This document shows, piece after piece, positions 3,821-26,885 of a stretch of 64,000 bases of DNA; positions within the stretch are counted from its first letter, which is position 1, and each line of letters starts with the position of its first letter. Location of the stretch: sequence record OP079919.1; one strand, written 5' to 3'. The notes under the pieces were generated by a model, which searched no databases, was not told the DNA's origin, and saw only the letters and a program-made list of their open reading frames with translations. A program made the translations under genes and the position numbers.

Positions 3821-3961
3821 ATGTCTGACATGTTTGACGTGGATCAACTCAACAACCTGAACCTGGAAGCGGTTGAAGAGAAAGTCGAATCTCTTCGTGA
3901 TGGTGGCGGTGAAGTTGTCGAGGCTTCCGATGAATGTGAAGGCGGCGCCTGCAAAATTTAA
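3821..3961 (+). CDS. 46-aa acidic protein ending in an NrdA-like redox tail (ECEGGACKI)
   Basis: AAGGA RBS at 3809-3813, ATG 3821, TAA 3959-3961, then a terminator. MSDMFDVDQLNNLNLEAVEEKVESLRDGGGEVVEASDECEGGACKI; the C-terminus resembles E. coli NrdA ...DDGCESGACKI. Confidence 0.8.
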   Translation: MSDMFDVDQLNNLNLEAVEEKVESLRDGGGEVVEASDECEGGACKI

Positions 3962-3970
3962 AACGCGTAA

Positions 3971-4004
3971 TAACTCCTACTCCCCGCATGGGGAGTAGGA
4001 GTTA
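3971..4004. terminator. Bidirectional terminator between convergent genes
   Basis: 15-bp perfect stem TAACTCCTACTCCCC/GGGGAGTAGGAGTTA with loop GCAT. Confidence 0.85.
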
Positions 4005-4020
4005 ACAGTACTTTTTTTTC

Positions 4021-4917
4021 TTACAGCATGTATTCAGGAGCGGTAACTTTAGCCGCTTCACGAGTCATCGCAGCAAGAGTTCCAGAATCGGTAAGACTCT
4101 GGAGAATCGCCGTAGGCTGCAGGAATCCGGATTCAGCACCGCGACCAGCTGGGTTATACATCGGGAGTTTGCTCAGGAAAGAACGAGCAATCTCTTTAGC
4201 GGCCTGGGTATCGAAATCGATCAGACCGGTGTATTCCATGTTGATGTCACGCATCTGACCAGCTTCGTCTTTGTTACGACGCATCTGGATTTCAACGGTG
4301 TTACGCGGCATGATGCCTACTGCAAGAGCAGCGTGGGCAACATCACGCATATTACGCGTCGGTTCCAGATAAATGTTCGCACAAGAGATTTGGTCGATCA
4401 GGAGATCACCTGGATCGTCGAGGATAACCGCACGAGGGTGACCCAGATCCGGATCGTTCAAACCATACAGAGACCAGGAGCGATGGAGGTTAGTATAAAC
4501 CTCACCTTCGATATCCACGCCAGCATGGTTGATAACACCGAGGGTACGAGTACCGCCCGACGGCACGGAGAATACACGGCCAGAGAAACGCTGTTCTGCG
4601 AATTCGGTCTCGATACGTTCAGAGAGACCGGTGATTTCACGACTACGCGTTTCAAACCAGGATTTCGCCAGTGAGTGGAGGATGTTACCTGCCGGCATAC
4701 GGCTAAACAACGCAGGGGTGCTGATACAGAAGCACCAGGTCTGCTGTTGAATATGCGGATGCTCGGAGACCATGTTGGCGATATTGGGAGCCCAGCCATA
4801 CTGGCCCCCTTGAGGGCCATTCAGAACAGGACGGTCGCCCACGCCGAACGCAGAGTACCATTCAGAACTCCCAGGTACCAGCGTGGTTGTGTTCCTAAAC
4901 GGAGTGTTGCTTGACAT
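4021..4917 (-). CDS. Tail tube protein (phiKZ gp30-like)
   Basis: 298 aa, immediately downstream of the sheath gene in the canonical sheath-tube order of phiKZ-like phages. Confidence 0.8.
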   Translation of the reverse strand: MSSNTPFRNTTTLVPGSSEWYSAFGVGDRPVLNGPQGGQYGWAPNIANMVSEHPHIQQQTWCFCISTPALFSRMPAGNILHSLAKSWFETRSREITGLSERIETEFAEQRFSGRVFSVPSGGTRTLGVINHAGVDIEGEVYTNLHRSWSLYGLNDPDLGHPRAVILDDPGDLLIDQISCANIYLEPTRNMRDVAHAALAVGIMPRNTVEIQMRRNKDEAGQMRDINMEYTGLIDFDTQAAKEIARSFLSKLPMYNPAGRGAESGFLQPTAILQSLTDSGTLAAMTREAAKVTAPEYML

Positions 4918-4932
4918 TTAGAGTCACCTTAC

Positions 4933-7092
4933 TTAGGAGTTAGTGGTATCGAGATCTTGTTCGTTATACGCGGCAAGACTCATGTTCATCATGTACTTAC
5001 CTTTACGGAACCAGACGTTAGCGACGGCGTTCAACACCGCACGACTGCCGGCTCCGGTCTCGTTATAAGTACAGTCAACCCGAAGGTCTTTAAACATGGT
5101 GCCCATACGACGACGAATAGCTGCTTCAGATGTGTCTTTTACCGTTGCCGCGTAAGTCGTAGCGTCAATGGTCGTATCGCCGGACACCAGTGTCCACGCA
5201 TCGGCGACAATCTTCTCAATACAAACCGCAGTGAAGTTAGTGATCAGATCTTTCAGCACAGAATCGTTATCGTCATACACCGTTGGAAGCGCAGGACGGT
5301 AATACTGAGACGTGTTGTACGGACGAAGACTGATACCACCTTCATCGAAGTTATTCGCAGCAGCGTCATCGCCTTCGAAGTCCATGGTCGGAGAATGCAT
5401 CTGAGTGAGGATACGGTTATCACCATGATCCGGAGAATTCACCGAGCTCAGGTTACCACCGCTATTACCGCCAAGACGAGCGAAGAAGTAAGCCAGGTCC
5501 AGCGTTTGCGGGAATTCAAGGCCGGTGCTTTCGTCGATGATCTTAGCATCCCACAGGGAGATAGCCGCACGGGACGCCGGAGTGCCGTAAAGCGAAGATT
5601 CCGGATACAGACGAATCTTAGTCGCCAGAGACTGCATCATGGAATAACGCTGGGCGATGGTATTGTCTTCCAGCCATTCGGAAGCCTGCAGGATCAGAAT
5701 CTGATCTTTGCGGGTGTTCCAGAGCTCGATCAGCGCGTTCTTAATATCCAGGTTATAACCCACATCCCAGATAACAGATTGGCGGTTGCGCGTCCAATCG
5801 TTAACAGTGGACGATTGAGCATAAGCCTGAATATCAGCCAGATACAGAGACTGGGCTACAGTCCAAGCGTCTTTGATACTCAGCTGGTCAATATGGCCGT
5901 TGTTGGTCGCCGGGTCGAAGTTGTAAGTTCCTTCAACCGGAACCGGTGTAGTCCGATCCGCTTTCAGGAACGGAGAGATACCGCCAGCAGCGTCGATATA
6001 ACCGGAGTTAGCGAACGGGTTAGCGTCATCCACCAACATACACGCATAGTACGGAACGTTGGTATGGTTGGTCAGCGTGAACGGGTTCATCTGACGAATT
6101 GGGTTGACGCCCGTTACGTTAACAAGCGCCGATTTACCGGCAGCCAGTTCTGCTGCATACAGCGCCGCACAAACTTCCTGGATGTTCTGATCGTAGACCT
6201 TGACTTCGTAGAACGGAGCAGGGCGCAGAGTCACCTGACGGTTGACGTTAGCGTTGGTGAAGTCACCCACTGCAGTCGCCAGGCTGTAACGAACATCGTA
6301 CTTGTCTTTGGTGTTGAACAGCGTGTACGTTGCCGATTCACCGCCATTAACGTTGGAGAAGAAAGTCGGGACGCCCGTAGAAGATTTTACGTACATTCTC
6401 ATTGAGAACGGGAACACGCCGTATTCTTCAACGAAATCTGACACTGAATCCCAATCCGTGGAAGCATCGAGACCCATGGTCAAACCGTGCAGGTTATATG
6501 CGTCACCAACGCCAGCCGGAAGTTCGAAGAACGGATACTGAGTAAACGTAACTTCTTCCCCATTCACCGTTTCGGTGAACGTCGATTTTACGAGCTTGCC
6601 GTATTCTGGCGTGGTCGGCGCGGTAACGTCGAGCTTAACCAGTTTAACGTAAACGCCCGGCACTGCGGTACCGCCGGTAACAGGGATCAGCTCACCGTCG
6701 TCGTCGAAAAGATAGCTGCCGTCAGTCGCACGCTGATACTGAGGAATAGATGTACCGTTCCCGATAGCGATGGCGTAAGCAACACGAGCTACTACGGTGT
6801 TGGCGGAAACACGGCGTACGCCAAAACCACCCTGACCGCCGGAGGTGATCATCGAGATCAGCCGAGATACCGGGGAGTAGTAAGGGGTGTCAACATCCAG
6901 GATATCGCCGTAAAGATTGGTAAAGTCACTTGAGTTTATGAAACTCTGTCCGAGTTCACCCTTAGGGGTGACTACGGGAATAACCGGGTAATGACAAGGA
7001 TACGTAGGCAGAGACGTTACCGGGTTTAAGCGGCCTTTATCGTCCATACCGTTATTGATGACTTGTCCCGGAATGATTTTTGTAAAGCTCAT
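4933..7092 (-). CDS. Contractile tail sheath protein (phiKZ gp29-like)
   Basis: 719 aa with strongly biased codons. Sheath-like N-terminus (IIPGQVINNG...PVVTPKG...FTNLYG) and C-terminal WDVGY segment; divergent from the baseplate/terminase operon as in phiKZ and SPN3US. Confidence 0.88.
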   Translation of the reverse strand: MSFTKIIPGQVINNGMDDKGRLNPVTSLPTYPCHYPVIPVVTPKGELGQSFINSSDFTNLYGDILDVDTPYYSPVSRLISMITSGGQGGFGVRRVSANTVVARVAYAIAIGNGTSIPQYQRATDGSYLFDDDGELIPVTGGTAVPGVYVKLVKLDVTAPTTPEYGKLVKSTFTETVNGEEVTFTQYPFFELPAGVGDAYNLHGLTMGLDASTDWDSVSDFVEEYGVFPFSMRMYVKSSTGVPTFFSNVNGGESATYTLFNTKDKYDVRYSLATAVGDFTNANVNRQVTLRPAPFYEVKVYDQNIQEVCAALYAAELAAGKSALVNVTGVNPIRQMNPFTLTNHTNVPYYACMLVDDANPFANSGYIDAAGGISPFLKADRTTPVPVEGTYNFDPATNNGHIDQLSIKDAWTVAQSLYLADIQAYAQSSTVNDWTRNRQSVIWDVGYNLDIKNALIELWNTRKDQILILQASEWLEDNTIAQRYSMMQSLATKIRLYPESSLYGTPASRAAISLWDAKIIDESTGLEFPQTLDLAYFFARLGGNSGGNLSSVNSPDHGDNRILTQMHSPTMDFEGDDAAANNFDEGGISLRPYNTSQYYRPALPTVYDDNDSVLKDLITNFTAVCIEKIVADAWTLVSGDTTIDATTYAATVKDTSEAAIRRRMGTMFKDLRVDCTYNETGAGSRAVLNAVANVWFRKGKYMMNMSLAAYNEQDLDTTNS

Positions 7093-23685: not shown

Positions 23686-24420
23686 ATGCAACCAGCTAAC
23701 CCATGGAAAAACAACAAACACGTTAAATCACAAGATAACACCACCGCAGACCGGTACGAATCTCTTCTGCGTGAATTACCTGATGCGCTCAATGCGACTC
23801 CCAGAGACCCAGGTTACTTGATCGCTACCAAAAAGATTTTATTAGTACTGGAAATTCTCGAAGGAACTCGATTGTCAGTTCGTGACGTGATGGAAAACGA
23901 GAACCTGATTCGTAAAGTTCACGAGTTACTGGTGGAGTTGGGTTGGAAGCAAGCGATTAGCCGAGGGACTCAGGTTTTTGTTACTCACCAGGATTTAATT
24001 AAACCGGGTGTTTACCGATTGATTGATCTCGATGAAACCGCGATGGGTTACACCAAAGAGATCATGGATCATATTTTATTAGACCGTCGGTTCAGTGTTC
24101 GGGTGGACGGTAACGATATCCGGATTCTTCCTGGAGACCGTAGTGCGAGTAATCCGTTTAGTCTGCTGTCTGCTAACGTAGTAAGTAGCTGGCGTAAGGC
24201 GATACGGGAATACGATAAAACTGTTACCAGTAATCTTATTGGACATCTGACGGTTATCGGCGAAGATACGATGAGTTGCCCGCTCGATTTAAAACTCATC
24301 TTCGCCCTGCTGGATTACCTCGGCTGGCCGGAAATGTATTTAACCGGCGAACAGATCTTATTGAGTAACCCCATGGGTGATTATCAAACCCTCGAGGTGA
24401 ATTTTATCGATCCTGAGTAA
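23686..24420 (+). CDS. Hypothetical protein (244 aa)
   Basis: GAGG RBS; apparent internal duplication of an LLxxLGW...G(T/E)Q motif. Confidence 0.75.
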   Translation: MQPANPWKNNKHVKSQDNTTADRYESLLRELPDALNATPRDPGYLIATKKILLVLEILEGTRLSVRDVMENENLIRKVHELLVELGWKQAISRGTQVFVTHQDLIKPGVYRLIDLDETAMGYTKEIMDHILLDRRFSVRVDGNDIRILPGDRSASNPFSLLSANVVSSWRKAIREYDKTVTSNLIGHLTVIGEDTMSCPLDLKLIFALLDYLGWPEMYLTGEQILLSNPMGDYQTLEVNFIDPE

Positions 24421-24672
24421 TTCTCAACTACAGTCCGATGTTATTAGTAAAGATCTTTGGACTCCCTGTTGATTAACTAGCGACCCAACCTCATCTCTTT
24501 GAACCTCCTTACCACGAGCGAGATAACCAAAGTAGCTAGGGATTTTCAGGGGGTTCAATCCCCATTTTCGTTAATCTTATTAGACCCACTGTCCTAAGCC
24601 CATGAAGCCTTGAAATCTCTCCTGTAGCAGACAAAGTTTTCGTTCGGTGGGATAGATTAACGTTTTTATTCA

Positions 24673-24745
24673 CGTCGTATTATCTGATGAGTCTTCGACG
24701 CTAAACAAGACGAAACCTAATGAATCTATTTTATTAGGTCATAAT
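24673..24745 (+). ncRNA. Type I hammerhead ribozyme (self-cleaving after C24740)
   Basis: Stem I ATTAT(24679-83)/ATAAT(24741-45); core CTGATGA(24684-90); stem II GTCTT/AAGAC; GAAA(24712-15); stem III CCTAAT/ATTAGG; GTC cleavage triplet. Loop II CGACG is complementary to upstream CGTCG(24673-77), giving a pseudoknot. Confidence 0.93.
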
Positions 24746-25376
24746 TCAACCTAAGCGTTGAACGGGCAGTTAGGGGCAATGGTCCCCGAGGTCTTCAGCT
24801 TCTTCGCCTGCCCGCACTAAAAAGTTCTTTCATGATTAGGCGTGCCGCGCTCTACGAGCGGACAACAAGCAACCGAAAGTGGGAGAGAAAGAAGCGTGTC
24901 CGGTCGCTTGCCGGAAAGTTGGTTCAGGCGGGTTTCTTCCCAACCCAAACGACGCTGCCCAAGATAGGGCTGCAAGTCGTATTAGCGTATTATACCGGTA
25001 TGCGGGGTTTCTGCGATAAACCGGGTTAGCTACGGGTAAGAAACCGGCCGGAGTAATCAGCCTTTCGTATTCGGGTAACGTGAGTTATCGTAGAGATATC
25101 TCTGAGGGTTAGGCCAACCCCCGACGTTCTTCGAGTACGAAGGGAAGCTTGCTCAGCTTCGTAGAAACTCCAAAATCTCAGACGGTCACACCTCGCAATC
25201 TTACGGCAGTATGATTGCCTATTCGTCCTTTGTCGCTCACCAAGGGGCGAGTAGGAAACCTCTGCCACGGCGTTTCGATTGTTTGCCTTTGCCATAACCC
25301 TCCTGTATAGGTTGAGTGTTAACTTCCCCAAGAGTATAACCTGTTATCTCTCTCTTCGTGAGGAGTCGGAGATAAT
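24741..25376 (+). ncRNA. Putative large structured ncRNA (~580-635 nt) downstream of the hammerhead
   Basis: GC-richer stretch with no credible ORF, more than 12 stems, multiway junctions, GTGA (GNRA) tetraloops and a 10-bp end-to-end helix 24744-53/25308-17. Confidence 0.7.
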
Positions 25377-25400
25377 GGGATAAATTCTTAGGAGTTCGTT

Positions 25401-25589
25401 ATGTACACATACCAGTATACCGTGCGATACCGAATACCTAATTCTGTGTTTACGACTTACAGCGGAGAAATTACTTCTGACTGTTTGCTCAATAACGCTA
25501 ATCGCATTTTTGATGTCTTGCGTACTGAAGTTCTTAAAGCTGTTAACGTTAACTCGTTTAGCATTACGAACTTTAAGCTGAAAGAATAA
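25401..25589 (+). CDS. Small hypothetical protein (62 aa)
   Basis: AGGAG RBS at 25389-25393; lies between two structured RNA blocks. Confidence 0.7.
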   Translation: MYTYQYTVRYRIPNSVFTTYSGEITSDCLLNNANRIFDVLRTEVLKAVNVNSFSITNFKLKE

Positions 25590-25759
25590 GTCGAGCTACG
25601 CGCTCAACCTACCTTAGGGCCGGAAGTAGTTACGACTTAGGGGGAAAGAAGAGTCGTGCCTTTGAGTACCCCAACCCCATTCGTGTGGTGATCTTCCACA
25701 TCATCCCATGGATAATGCTGCATCATCATCATTAAAGTTCTACCATGAATTTTATTCCT

Positions 25760-25790
25760 TCCAGTAGGGTTCGTCCCTACTGGACTTTTT
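25760..25790 (+). terminator. Intrinsic terminator closing the RNA locus
   Basis: TCCAGTAGGG-TTCGT-CCCTACTGGA followed by CTTTTTT. Confidence 0.8.
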
Positions 25791-25922
25791 TCGCGTTTTA
25801 TTTATCGGCACATATAAGGTTATAGAGGAACTAGATTTTTTGAGTTCTAAATTATGGTAATGTAAAGCAAAAGATAATGCTTTCCATTCCAACTATCATA
25901 ATTTCTTTTAGGAGTTTCATCT

Positions 25923-26885
25923 ATGAGCACATTACGTGTTTACGCGTGCGGCGGTACCGGTATTAATATTGCGTCTAAATGGATTGCCACCGGTGCGAAT
26001 ACGCTTATTCGTAAAGCCCAGTTCATTGGACTGGATAGCAGTGAAAACAACAAACCGTATAACGACGCCTTTAAGGTCGAACGTCCTGAAGGAACTCGTG
26101 GCGGTGGCAAAGAACGTAAGCTGATCGGTAAAATCGCTGCTGGGTTTATTGACAGTATTTTGACCAAACATAAACCGGGCGATTTCAACCTGATCATCAT
26201 GAACGCGGCTGGCGCTACCGGGAGTACGTTCGGCCCGACTCTGATCAACCGTCTCCTCACCCAGGGCGTTCCGGTCATTGCGTTGGTCGTAGGTGACCTG
26301 ACTTCTGAACTGGAAAACTACAACACGGTTAAAACGTTTGAAAGCCTGGACAACCAGCGCATCAATCTGAACGTGCCGGTTATCATCGACTACGTGGACA
26401 ACGCCAAATATCCCAGCCGTGGATTGGCCGACAAATATGCCATCGGCCGTCTTGATATCCTGAGCCTGTTCTTAACCGACGAACACGAAGAAAGCGATTT
26501 CCAAGACATCCGGAACCTGTTCTATTACAACCAGGTTACCAAGGCGGCGCCTACTCTTGCTCGTATCGACTTCTTGACCGATACTCAGTTAGACAACGTT
26601 ACTCCGGGGCTGGTTGCTGAATTTGGTTTGTATCGTAAAGCGGACGATATCGGTAGCCATATTAAAAATCTGGCATACCGTTCGACCGGCGTTATTCAGG
26701 AAGGTAGCACTAACTTCCCGGCTGGAATAGAACATCTCCACATGGTCTTTGACCACGATGCGACGATTAAAGATATCTTGGTTCTGGTCCAGGATCTTAA
26801 AGATATTGAGATCCAAAATAACGAACGTTTTAAATCCGCTCAGCAGGTTGGAAACGGCGGCGATGATTCTGGAATGTCCTACTAA
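25923..26885 (+). CDS. phuZ: Phage tubulin PhuZ
   Basis: YACGGTGIN (T1), GLDSS, GGG (T3), AAGATGST (variant tubulin signature), DFQD (T7); 320 aa; upstream of the DNA polymerase/chimallin block. Confidence 0.92.
   Translation: MSTLRVYACGGTGINIASKWIATGANTLIRKAQFIGLDSSENNKPYNDAFKVERPEGTRGGGKERKLIGKIAAGFIDSILTKHKPGDFNLIIMNAAGATGSTFGPTLINRLLTQGVPVIALVVGDLTSELENYNTVKTFESLDNQRINLNVPVIIDYVDNAKYPSRGLADKYAIGRLDILSLFLTDEHEESDFQDIRNLFYYNQVTKAAPTLARIDFLTDTQLDNVTPGLVAEFGLYRKADDIGSHIKNLAYRSTGVIQEGSTNFPAGIEHLHMVFDHDATIKDILVLVQDLKDIEIQNNERFKSAQQVGNGGDDSGMSY

Follow-up and report, generated by a model that had tools for sequence, protein, structure and literature searches.

Klebsiella phage KPN8 (OP079919.1) has a genome of 256,576 bp with genes for the tubulin PhuZ and for a split multisubunit RNA polymerase, which agrees with the jumbo phage origin proposed in a first-pass annotation made from the letters of the DNA alone. 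The window analysed here is a stretch of 64,000 nucleotides (nt) of this record (window position = record position - 186000), and the element under study is a candidate self-cleaving hammerhead ribozyme at 24673-24745 on the plus strand. It is located within a 1.5-kb stretch between an open reading frame (ORF) of 244 amino acids (aa), referred to as ORF244 (23686-24420), and phuZ (25923-26885), in which the sole credible gene is an ORF of 62 aa. The flanking genes and a strong terminator are all on the plus strand, and six further deposited Miami-like records, five of them distinct, share the region at 93-97% identity. The same annotation had stated that the element has no transfer RNA (tRNA) or retroelement context: ARAGORN calls no tRNA in the window or in the related loci, and no retroelement signal was seen, a point on which only Pfam scans of the neighbouring ORFs bear.

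Every element that defines a hammerhead can be read from the sequence, in the order of a type I ribozyme:

24673-24677, plus strand: 5' arm of the pseudoknot, CGUCG, whose partner is the CGACG of loop II (24696-24700)
24679-24745, plus strand: type I hammerhead proper, recognised by sequence, descriptor against shuffles, and covariation
24679-24683 and 24741-24745, plus strand: stem I, 5 bp, AUUAU with AUAAU
24684-24690, plus strand: core C3-A9, CUGAUGA
24691-24711, plus strand: stem-loop II
24691-24695 and 24707-24711, plus strand: stem II, 5 bp, GUCUU with AAGAC, opening with the pair G10.1-C11.1
24696-24706, plus strand: loop II, CGACGCUAAAC, 11 nt
24712-24714, plus strand: G12, A13 and A14
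24715-24739, plus strand: stem-loop III, 10 bp opening with A15.1-U16.1, strands ACCUAAUGAA and UUUAUUAGGU, 5-nt loop UCUAU
24738-24740, plus strand: cleavage triplet GUC, C17 being 24740 and the predicted scissile bond 24740/24741

The coordinates and each of the elements named in the first-pass annotation are correct. Stem I is not closed by a loop: its strands are separated by 57 nt that comprise the core and stem-loops II and III. As stems II and III are capped while stem I is open, the topology is that of type I. The arm CGUCG is the exact complement of the CGACG in loop II, and a single nucleotide separates it from stem I. The GUC triplet, identical in all sequences compared, fits the NUH rule (H17 is not G), and CUGAUGA and GAA are invariant in the five distinct sequences apart from N7, which is U or C. 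Stem III comprises 7-10 bp and its first pair is A-U, the first pair of stem II being G-C. Judged by all the features of sequence and structure that can be assessed in silico, with the exception of the Rfam score thresholds, the element is a member of the hammerhead class.

Chance expectation was estimated with a strict descriptor (core plus stems of at least 5, 5 and 6 bp) on 200 first-order Markov shuffles of the window, both strands included. This descriptor finds a single site in the window and none in the shuffles (0/200). A loose version gives about 0.2 hits per window, and the rest of the 256-kb KPN8 genome contains no other good hammerhead, only loose matches with 3-bp stems. A 5-bp Watson-Crick match between an 11-nt loop and a flank of about 12 nt has, by our own estimate, a chance frequency of about 5%, so comparative support was needed for the pseudoknot, and it was obtained.

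Two further lineages were located in Logan assemblies by protein searches with PhuZ and ORF244. The three lineages compared are the KPN8/Miami clade, the phage of SRR11192622 (contigs L016 and L010) and the phage of SRR21633404 (contig L023), and in all of them the hammerhead is kept at the same locus, upstream of the small ORF and phuZ. Relative to KPN8, PhuZ, ORF244 and the small ORF of the SRR11192622 phage are 74%, 41% and 63% identical, respectively, while in L023 the values are 49% for PhuZ and 34% for the small ORF. Contig L016 ends inside the locus, and L010 begins in the 3' part of the structured block that follows the ribozyme. Apart from a 13-mer, the upstream sequence of L016 cannot be aligned with that of KPN8 until GUCGUAUUAU, which starts at the pseudoknot arm; from this point, near-identity spans the ribozyme and the first 21 nt of the downstream block. 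L023 retains all core bases and a stem II identical to that of KPN8, and the hammerhead is the strongest nucleotide match between the two at this locus (80% over 79 nt, E 3.5e-13).

The changes that separate these lineages preserve pairing. Stem I is AUUAU/AUAAU in KPN8 and GUCAU/AUGAC in L023, with two double-sided changes, and the pseudoknot goes from CGUCG/CGACG to CGUCU/AGACG, one G-C pair being replaced by U-A with the 1-nt spacer kept; in L016 the pseudoknot is reduced to 4 bp. Among the five distinct sequences, standard pairs occupy 98.2% of 110 pair cells, and double-sided changes are seen at three pairs, of which two belong to stem I and one to the pseudoknot. The observed values of pairing and covariation are reached by 6 of 500 column shuffles, and pairing falls to 22-55% when the partners are slid by 1-3 columns. 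Stems II and III are too invariant to provide more than little, if any, covariation evidence. Both the type I hammerhead and the contact between loop II and the 5' arm that had been proposed in the first-pass annotation recur in the other lineages, with compensatory changes in L023.

Within the KPN8 clade, identities were obtained by comparing KPN8 with Miami, the metagenomic contig L015 and VB_ZK_P1 (ORF244 and the spacer with Miami and L015 only). The ribozyme is 94.5-98.6% identical, the 5' non-coding domain that precedes it (24437-24600) 96-99%, the downstream block (24746-25285) 96-98% and phuZ 92-97%, with 81% for ORF244 and 68-70% for the spacer 24601-24650. Within the ribozyme, the differences amount to a G for A24679 in Miami, so that a stem I pair is G-U instead of A-U, a C for U7 in L015 (the sole core substitution seen anywhere), and two changed bases in the loop II tail, which takes no part in the pseudoknot. 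Substitutions are confined to places that the class tolerates, namely N7, the tail of loop II and distal stem III. According to these data, the element is very probably a functional hammerhead maintained by selection.

Around the ribozyme, the following features have been recognised:

24437-24600, plus strand: 5' non-coding domain, upstream of the ribozyme
24549-24572, plus strand: short G+C hairpin GGGGGUUCAAUCCCC followed by the U-run AUUUUCGUU, terminator-like in the terminator scan
24745-24762, plus strand: hairpin P1, UUCAAC-CUAAGC-GUUGAA, found in minimum-free-energy folds and sharing U24745 with stem I
24746-25285, plus strand: G+C-rich structured non-coding block of about 540 nt, recognised by stop codons, G+C content, fold z-score and identity
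25321-25400, plus strand: leader element made up of UAACCUGUUA, a hairpin and UAAUGGGA, together with the small-ORF ribosome-binding site; identity among close relatives 97-99%
25401-25589, plus strand: 62-aa ORF, the first gene 3' of the ribozyme, with homologues at the same position in L010 and L023
25760-25793, plus strand: intrinsic terminator, a 10-bp stem followed by a U-run, found in the terminator scan and conserved in all relatives

Several observations weigh against a functional hammerhead that acts in a leader. None of the Rfam families reaches its gathering score. With relaxed thresholds, Hammerhead_3 (RF00008) scores 24.2 bits against a required 48.5 (E 0.039), in the wrong register, and RAGATH-1-hammerhead (RF03152) scores 21.0 bits against 56.3, in the correct register, over model positions 25-77. 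The first-pass annotation had suggested a comparison with Rfam hammerhead models; two of them match at relaxed thresholds and none at the gathering score. The register of the second model is correct through stem I, CUGAUGAG, stem II, CGAAAC, stem III and GUC, although only its 3' two-thirds are matched. The L023 copy gives 19.1 and 18.8 bits with the Rfam hammerhead models, likewise below the thresholds of these families of clan CL00010. The element is not a member of the seed-defined families RF00008 and RF03152 as curated, and owing to these sub-threshold scores it is unannotated in all deposited genomes and has been missed by curated pipelines. Moreover, the nearest-neighbour fold of the isolated region has -21.2 kcal/mol, against -10.2 for the hammerhead fold with the pseudoknot left out, and the preferred non-hammerhead folds include a helix between 24694-24702 and 24754-24762. 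Stem I of KPN8 consists of five A-U pairs and is weak. With respect to covariation, every double-sided change comes from a single sequence, that of L023, stem II never varies and stem III shows one-sided variation only. Finally, the weak terminator-like hairpin at 24549-24563 lies upstream of the ribozyme.

The sub-threshold Rfam scores would suit an inactive relic, or a chance look-alike, with no present function. This explanation is extremely improbable in view of the absence of any match in the 200 shuffles, of invariant core bases kept in three lineages whose flanking proteins are only 34-74% identical, of the compensatory changes in stem I and the pseudoknot, and of a ribozyme identity of 95-99% against 68-70% in the neutral-looking spacer.

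The folding results bear on another alternative, in which the ribozyme would be conditional, its cleavage being switched by alternative pairing with the flanks or by a binding factor in order to time processing during infection. The unconstrained minimum-free-energy fold does differ from the hammerhead fold, the 9-bp helix 24694-24702/24754-24762 competes with stem II, the pseudoknot and P1, and large conserved domains are present on both sides. Nevertheless, a conditional ribozyme is very unlikely: minimum-free-energy misprediction is usual for hammerheads, because neither the core nor the pseudoknot is modelled, the alternative helix is weakened in L015, and Rfam recognises no ligand-binding motif. 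As an observation in its own right, UUCGACGCU, which belongs to stem II and loop II, can form these 9 bp with AGCGUUGAA, the 3' strand of P1, and the resulting helix would exclude the active ribozyme fold, a possible on/off switch that is weakened in L015.

Part of the sequence upstream of the ribozyme is conserved as well. Within otherwise unalignable sequence, the 13-mer ACCUCCUUACCAC (24502-24515) is kept in L016 (about 1504-1516) and in L023 (470-482). It is the only sequence upstream of the ribozyme common to the three lineages, and occurs once in the 64-kb window. This 13-mer contains CCUCCUUA, which we take to be the last nine bases of the 16S ribosomal RNA (rRNA), that is, the anti-Shine-Dalgarno sequence. 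L023 holds a second CCUCCUUA at 518-525, beside the ribozyme. The folds predicted locally for the motif are weak and vary from lineage to lineage. A minus-strand Shine-Dalgarno role for CCUCCUUA was considered and rejected, as it is followed by ORFs of 5-6 codons or by none, and these are not conserved. In the KPN8 clade, the segment 24488-24527, which forms the CCUCCUUA hairpin, is complementary to 25342-25381, a hairpin located just upstream of the ribosome-binding site of the small ORF, with a duplex energy of -37.4 kcal/mol against -21.7 +/- 3.4 for shuffles. This pairing is absent in the other two lineages, and its confinement to the KPN8 clade indicates that it is not part of the core mechanism. 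The hairpin at 24549-24572 resembles both a tRNA T-arm and a weak intrinsic terminator; no tRNA is called there, and the hairpin is absent from L016.

In all three lineages, structured non-coding RNA is encoded upstream of the ribozyme (fold z-score of -4.1 in L023). Contig L023 shows no same-strand ORF in the approximately 520 nt upstream of the ribozyme arm; these contain an A+T-rich stretch and, on the minus strand, a small ORF with its terminator, followed by a structured non-coding 5' domain of about 240 nt. Since no same-strand gene precedes the ribozyme in this lineage, its constant neighbours are non-coding RNA on both sides. The first-pass annotation had placed the ribozyme at the exact 5' boundary of a large structured block. 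Such a block does follow it, but the conserved domain at 24437-24600 precedes it; the ribozyme accordingly lies midway in a non-coding leader of about 1 kb, which it would split.

According to one explanation, the main task of the ribozyme would be to cut an operon, separating the ORF244 messenger RNA (mRNA) from the small-ORF message. This general idea has been proposed for the hammerheads that flank prophage genes (PMC3088659), and it is consistent with a same-strand ORF that ends 253 nt upstream of the ribozyme in KPN8 (about 240 nt in L016), with only a weak terminator-like hairpin in between. We consider it unlikely, because L023 lacks such an ORF in the approximately 520 nt before the ribozyme and the conserved partner of the ribozyme is non-coding RNA, and because ORF244 is the least conserved part of the locus.

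The 13-mer raises a different possibility, namely that the 5' product would itself be functional, as an RNA of about 300 nt that displays the 16S-3'-end-like CCUCCUUA and carries a compact ribozyme fold with a 2',3'-cyclic phosphate at its 3' end. Its targets would be Shine-Dalgarno sequences, or a protein with affinity for the 3' end of 16S rRNA. Three features are in line with it: ACCUCCUUACCAC is the only other upstream stretch that survives in three lineages, and is unique in the window; L023 has its second CCUCCUUA next to the ribozyme; and the type I layout keeps the ribozyme on the 5' product. This proposal is nevertheless quite unlikely to be the main explanation, as no target has been identified, the weak and lineage-differing local folds do not establish that the motif is displayed in a loop, the long complementarity to the small-ORF leader exists in the KPN8 clade only, and a C/U-rich motif of 9 nt could instead be a signal at the DNA level.

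Downstream of the ribozyme, the block at 24746-25285 has the characteristics of a structured RNA. Its G+C content is 0.48-0.535 in windows spanning 24700-25299, against 0.44 for the whole window, and stop codons abound in all six frames of 24741-25331. In the deposited records, the minus-strand coding sequences KPN8_253 (24836-25060) and KPN8_254 (25026-25331), as well as Miami gp268 and gp269, overlap the block, and the records of the other relatives annotate nothing within it; in view of the stop codons in all six frames, these four genes are probably spurious. The fold z-score of the block against shuffles is -3.97 on the plus strand and -2.68 on the minus strand. In a consensus fold fitted to the alignment, 13 of 15 variable pairs keep pairing, and 12 of these 13 involve C-G/U-G or A-U/G-U changes that preserve pairing on the plus strand only, the remaining one being a full compensation. 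As this consensus fold was chosen to fit the alignment, single-sequence folds represent a fairer control. With them, pairing is better preserved on the plus than on the minus strand when three of the four references are used, and the KPN8 reference gives a near-even result (11 pairs kept and 10 broken).

Searches of 24300-26800 against Rfam at E up to 10 returned, besides the two hammerhead models, only a chance-level SNORD26 (25323-25395), and positions 1-1400 of L023 gave chance-level matches only. No match was found in Rfam between the block and known large structured RNAs, such as GOLLD, ROOL, group I and II introns or RNase P, and no paralogue of the block was found elsewhere in the phage genome. 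An origin in the host or in a plasmid was rejected because the block has no match in E. coli genomes or plasmids. It was also considered as an intron splitting a gene, and this was rejected because ORF244 terminates at a stop codon in every relative and the small ORF comes with a ribosome-binding site and a start codon of its own.

As far as L016 and L010 extend into the block, their sequence is identical to that of KPN8; over most of its length, the block is lineage-specific. The 3' domain of L023 is shorter (about 350 nt) and strongly structured (z-score of -5.2), with a mostly different sequence. It shares with KPN8 a hairpin that immediately follows the predicted cleavage site, the hairpin CCNGGUCGCUNNCCGG, in which one pair shows a compensatory change, and short motifs near the ribosome-binding site of the small ORF. 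The hairpin that occupies the position of P1 in L023 has another sequence (ACGAC...GUCGU) and overlaps stem I by 2 nt. Closer to the gene, the motifs that flank the hairpin within 25321-25400 are kept in L010, where the sequence of the hairpin is entirely different and still pairs. From the sequences compared, the large downstream block appears to be lineage-variable and is not conserved as a whole. In addition, the 3' untranslated stretch from the 62-aa ORF to its terminator (25590-25760, plus strand) is G+C-rich and recognisably conserved even in L010, and may represent one more structured part of this transcript.

We consider it likely that this conserved and covarying motif, set on the plus strand in a gene-free structured context, is a pseudoknot-stabilised type I hammerhead that serves as a co-transcriptional processing site in the leader of the small-ORF unit upstream of phuZ, in line with the processing role suggested in the first-pass annotation. 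Cleavage and the resulting 5'-OH end would follow from the established behaviour of the hammerhead class, and from the arrangement of the locus we infer the boundaries of the transcript and possible effects on its stability or translation. During transcription of the plus strand, the core would fold together with stems II and III, and the pseudoknot between loop II and the 5' arm would hold stems I and II parallel. The RNA would then cut itself after C24740 by internal transesterification, without any protein. The 5' product would consist of the 5' domain with CCUCCUUA and, as a consequence of the type I layout, nearly the whole ribozyme, ending in a 2',3'-cyclic phosphate. The 3' product would begin at A24741 with a 5'-OH and contain five nucleotides of the ribozyme followed by the block, the 62-aa ORF and the terminator at 25760-25793, which would end the transcript. 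Since P1 overlaps stem I by 1 nt (2 nt in L023), it would compete with the weak stem I after the cut and favour release of the products. The outcome would be a precise, context-independent 5' end for the downstream leader-mRNA and the liberation of the 5' domain as a separate RNA. As further ideas, the 5'-OH end might slow 5'-end-dependent decay in the enterobacterial host, self-cleavage might be useful because transcription takes place inside the phage nucleus, away from host RNases, and the freed 5' RNA might act through its anti-Shine-Dalgarno-like motif.

A broader proposal, which we regard as distinctly doubtful, would make the ribozyme the junction of a hitherto undescribed non-coding RNA module, composed of two parts and confined to the Miami-like nucleus-forming phages. 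In such a module, the 5' RNA would mimic the 3' end of 16S rRNA (ACCUCCUUA) and the RNA of about 540 nt would be a new structural class with rRNA-like conservation. Each of them would have its own function, for example in the control or take-over of translation or in the handling of RNA in and out of the phage nucleus, and self-cleavage would be used because host RNases are unavailable where the RNA is made.

The proposed processing site can be compared with hammerheads already described. Bacterial and prophage hammerheads come in all three topologies, and a pseudoknot between stems I and II is predicted in about 40% of hammerheads across the three types (Perreault et al. 2011, PMC3088659). 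In a representative tested in that study, disruption of the pseudoknot drastically cut cleavage and a compensatory mutation restored high activity (PMC3088659). Those hammerheads have in common with that of KPN8 the catalytic core, the three-helix junction, the GUC site, a pseudoknot in place of a loop-loop contact and an intergenic position within a phage transcript, and for them a role in the processing of long transcripts has been proposed, not proven (PMC3088659). They are mostly of type II, near prophage integrase genes, and often several of them flank genes, whereas the hammerhead of KPN8, a lytic jumbo phage that forms a nucleus, is of type I, is present once and lies within a non-coding leader of about 1 kb.

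In the searched literature, no work links hammerheads and jumbo phages in this way, co-mentions being on unrelated topics, and what was found on ribozymes and Chimalliviridae comprises a group I intron, a taxonomy update and a review. As far as that literature shows, the setting is new, while this class of ribozyme, and the fact that phages carry it, are well established, and the RNA attached to the ribozyme may itself be new.

Two other systems place a self-cleaving ribozyme ahead of a message. The glmS leader holds one in the 5' leader of an mRNA, where cleavage leaves a 5'-OH on the coding fragment and sets its fate. It shares with the KPN8 element the leader position and the 5'-OH outcome, which is predicted for KPN8, and differs in ribozyme class and in its dependence on a metabolite. 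In Bacillus, RNase J1 degrades the 5'-OH product of glmS, whereas the 5'-end-dependent attack of RNase E in enterobacteria is expected to be slowed by such an end. RiboJ is an engineered insulator consisting of a hammerhead and then a hairpin before the ribosome-binding site, which removes variable upstream RNA. As in KPN8, the hammerhead is immediately trailed by a hairpin, and the downstream message acquires a fixed 5' end, which is predicted for KPN8. RiboJ is placed a few nucleotides from the ribosome-binding site, whereas about 650 nt of conserved structured RNA separate the predicted cut from the start codon in KPN8.

Hammerheads are abundant in phage and prophage DNA, where their biological role is still largely unproven. 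The cultured lytic phages with the KPN8-type element (KPN8, Miami, YC1, phiKp_32 and others) offer one unambiguous copy that can readily be manipulated; it has a fixed place before a tiny conserved gene and phuZ, and natural variants already supply compensatory mutations. Nucleus-forming phages separate transcription from the cytoplasmic enzymes of the host, which makes protein-free RNA processing a plausible adaptation. The orphan block of about 540 nt is as conserved as phuZ, and in current records it appears either as spurious 'hypothetical proteins' or without annotation. Recognising the flanking sequence as RNA corrects this annotation and marks a candidate new structured RNA.

With regard to distribution, the ribozyme and the 62-aa ORF co-occur in seven records of the phage collection, in one JGI metagenome genome and in several Logan/ENA contigs, and within the phage collection the ORF is found only in the seven ribozyme-bearing records. 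The ORF has no Pfam or PHROG match. The JGI genome, which was found by hammerhead patterns, is a near-identical Miami-like phage. Exact and degenerate hammerhead patterns retrieved nothing from IMG/VR or from the GTDB genomes, and searches of IMG/VR with PhuZ, ORF244 and an alignment of the small ORF yielded no relatives. With an nhmmer profile covering the entire region, no match was obtained near phuZ in Aphrodite1, PDCC-1 or RisingSun, and the loose descriptor matches in these three phages were rejected because they fall within coding sequence and have stems of 3-4 bp. The more distant phuZ contigs L024-L027 have no hammerhead. Co-occurrence only in these lineages suggests that the travelling unit comprises the 5' domain, the ribozyme, the 3' domain, the small ORF and the terminator before phuZ.

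Other gene-free regions precede phuZ in more distant phages. Contig L024, which is chimallivirus-like (PhuZ 35%), contains a gene-free stretch of 2.1 kb upstream of phuZ (3901-6000) with a tRNA-Asn and a tRNA-Gly and without a hammerhead, and the region ahead of phuZ may be a recurrent site for RNA genes. In Aphrodite1 (L007, 4503-5000), a gene-free G+C-rich region of 500 nt upstream of phuZ ends in a terminator-like hairpin and has no sequence similarity to the KPN8 leader.

A few further observations concern KPN8 itself. The product annotated as 'putative RNA ligase' (KPN8_60, record positions 66758-67225, L019 16758-17225) was considered as a possible handler of cyclic-phosphate ends, and this link was rejected because the protein matches Pfam Acb1, an anti-CBASS 2H phosphoesterase (E 6e-13). 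Within the window, the segment 22800-23500 is very A+T-rich (G+C content of 0.20-0.34) and separates a block of minus-strand genes from one of plus-strand genes; it probably represents a divergent promoter region, and the small ORFs annotated there are of doubtful reality. Elsewhere in the KPN8 record, 1.6 kb of unannotated sequence (L018, 15316-16926) end in a minus-strand ATG preceded by a ribosome-binding site, and look like an unannotated minus-strand gene rather than an RNA.

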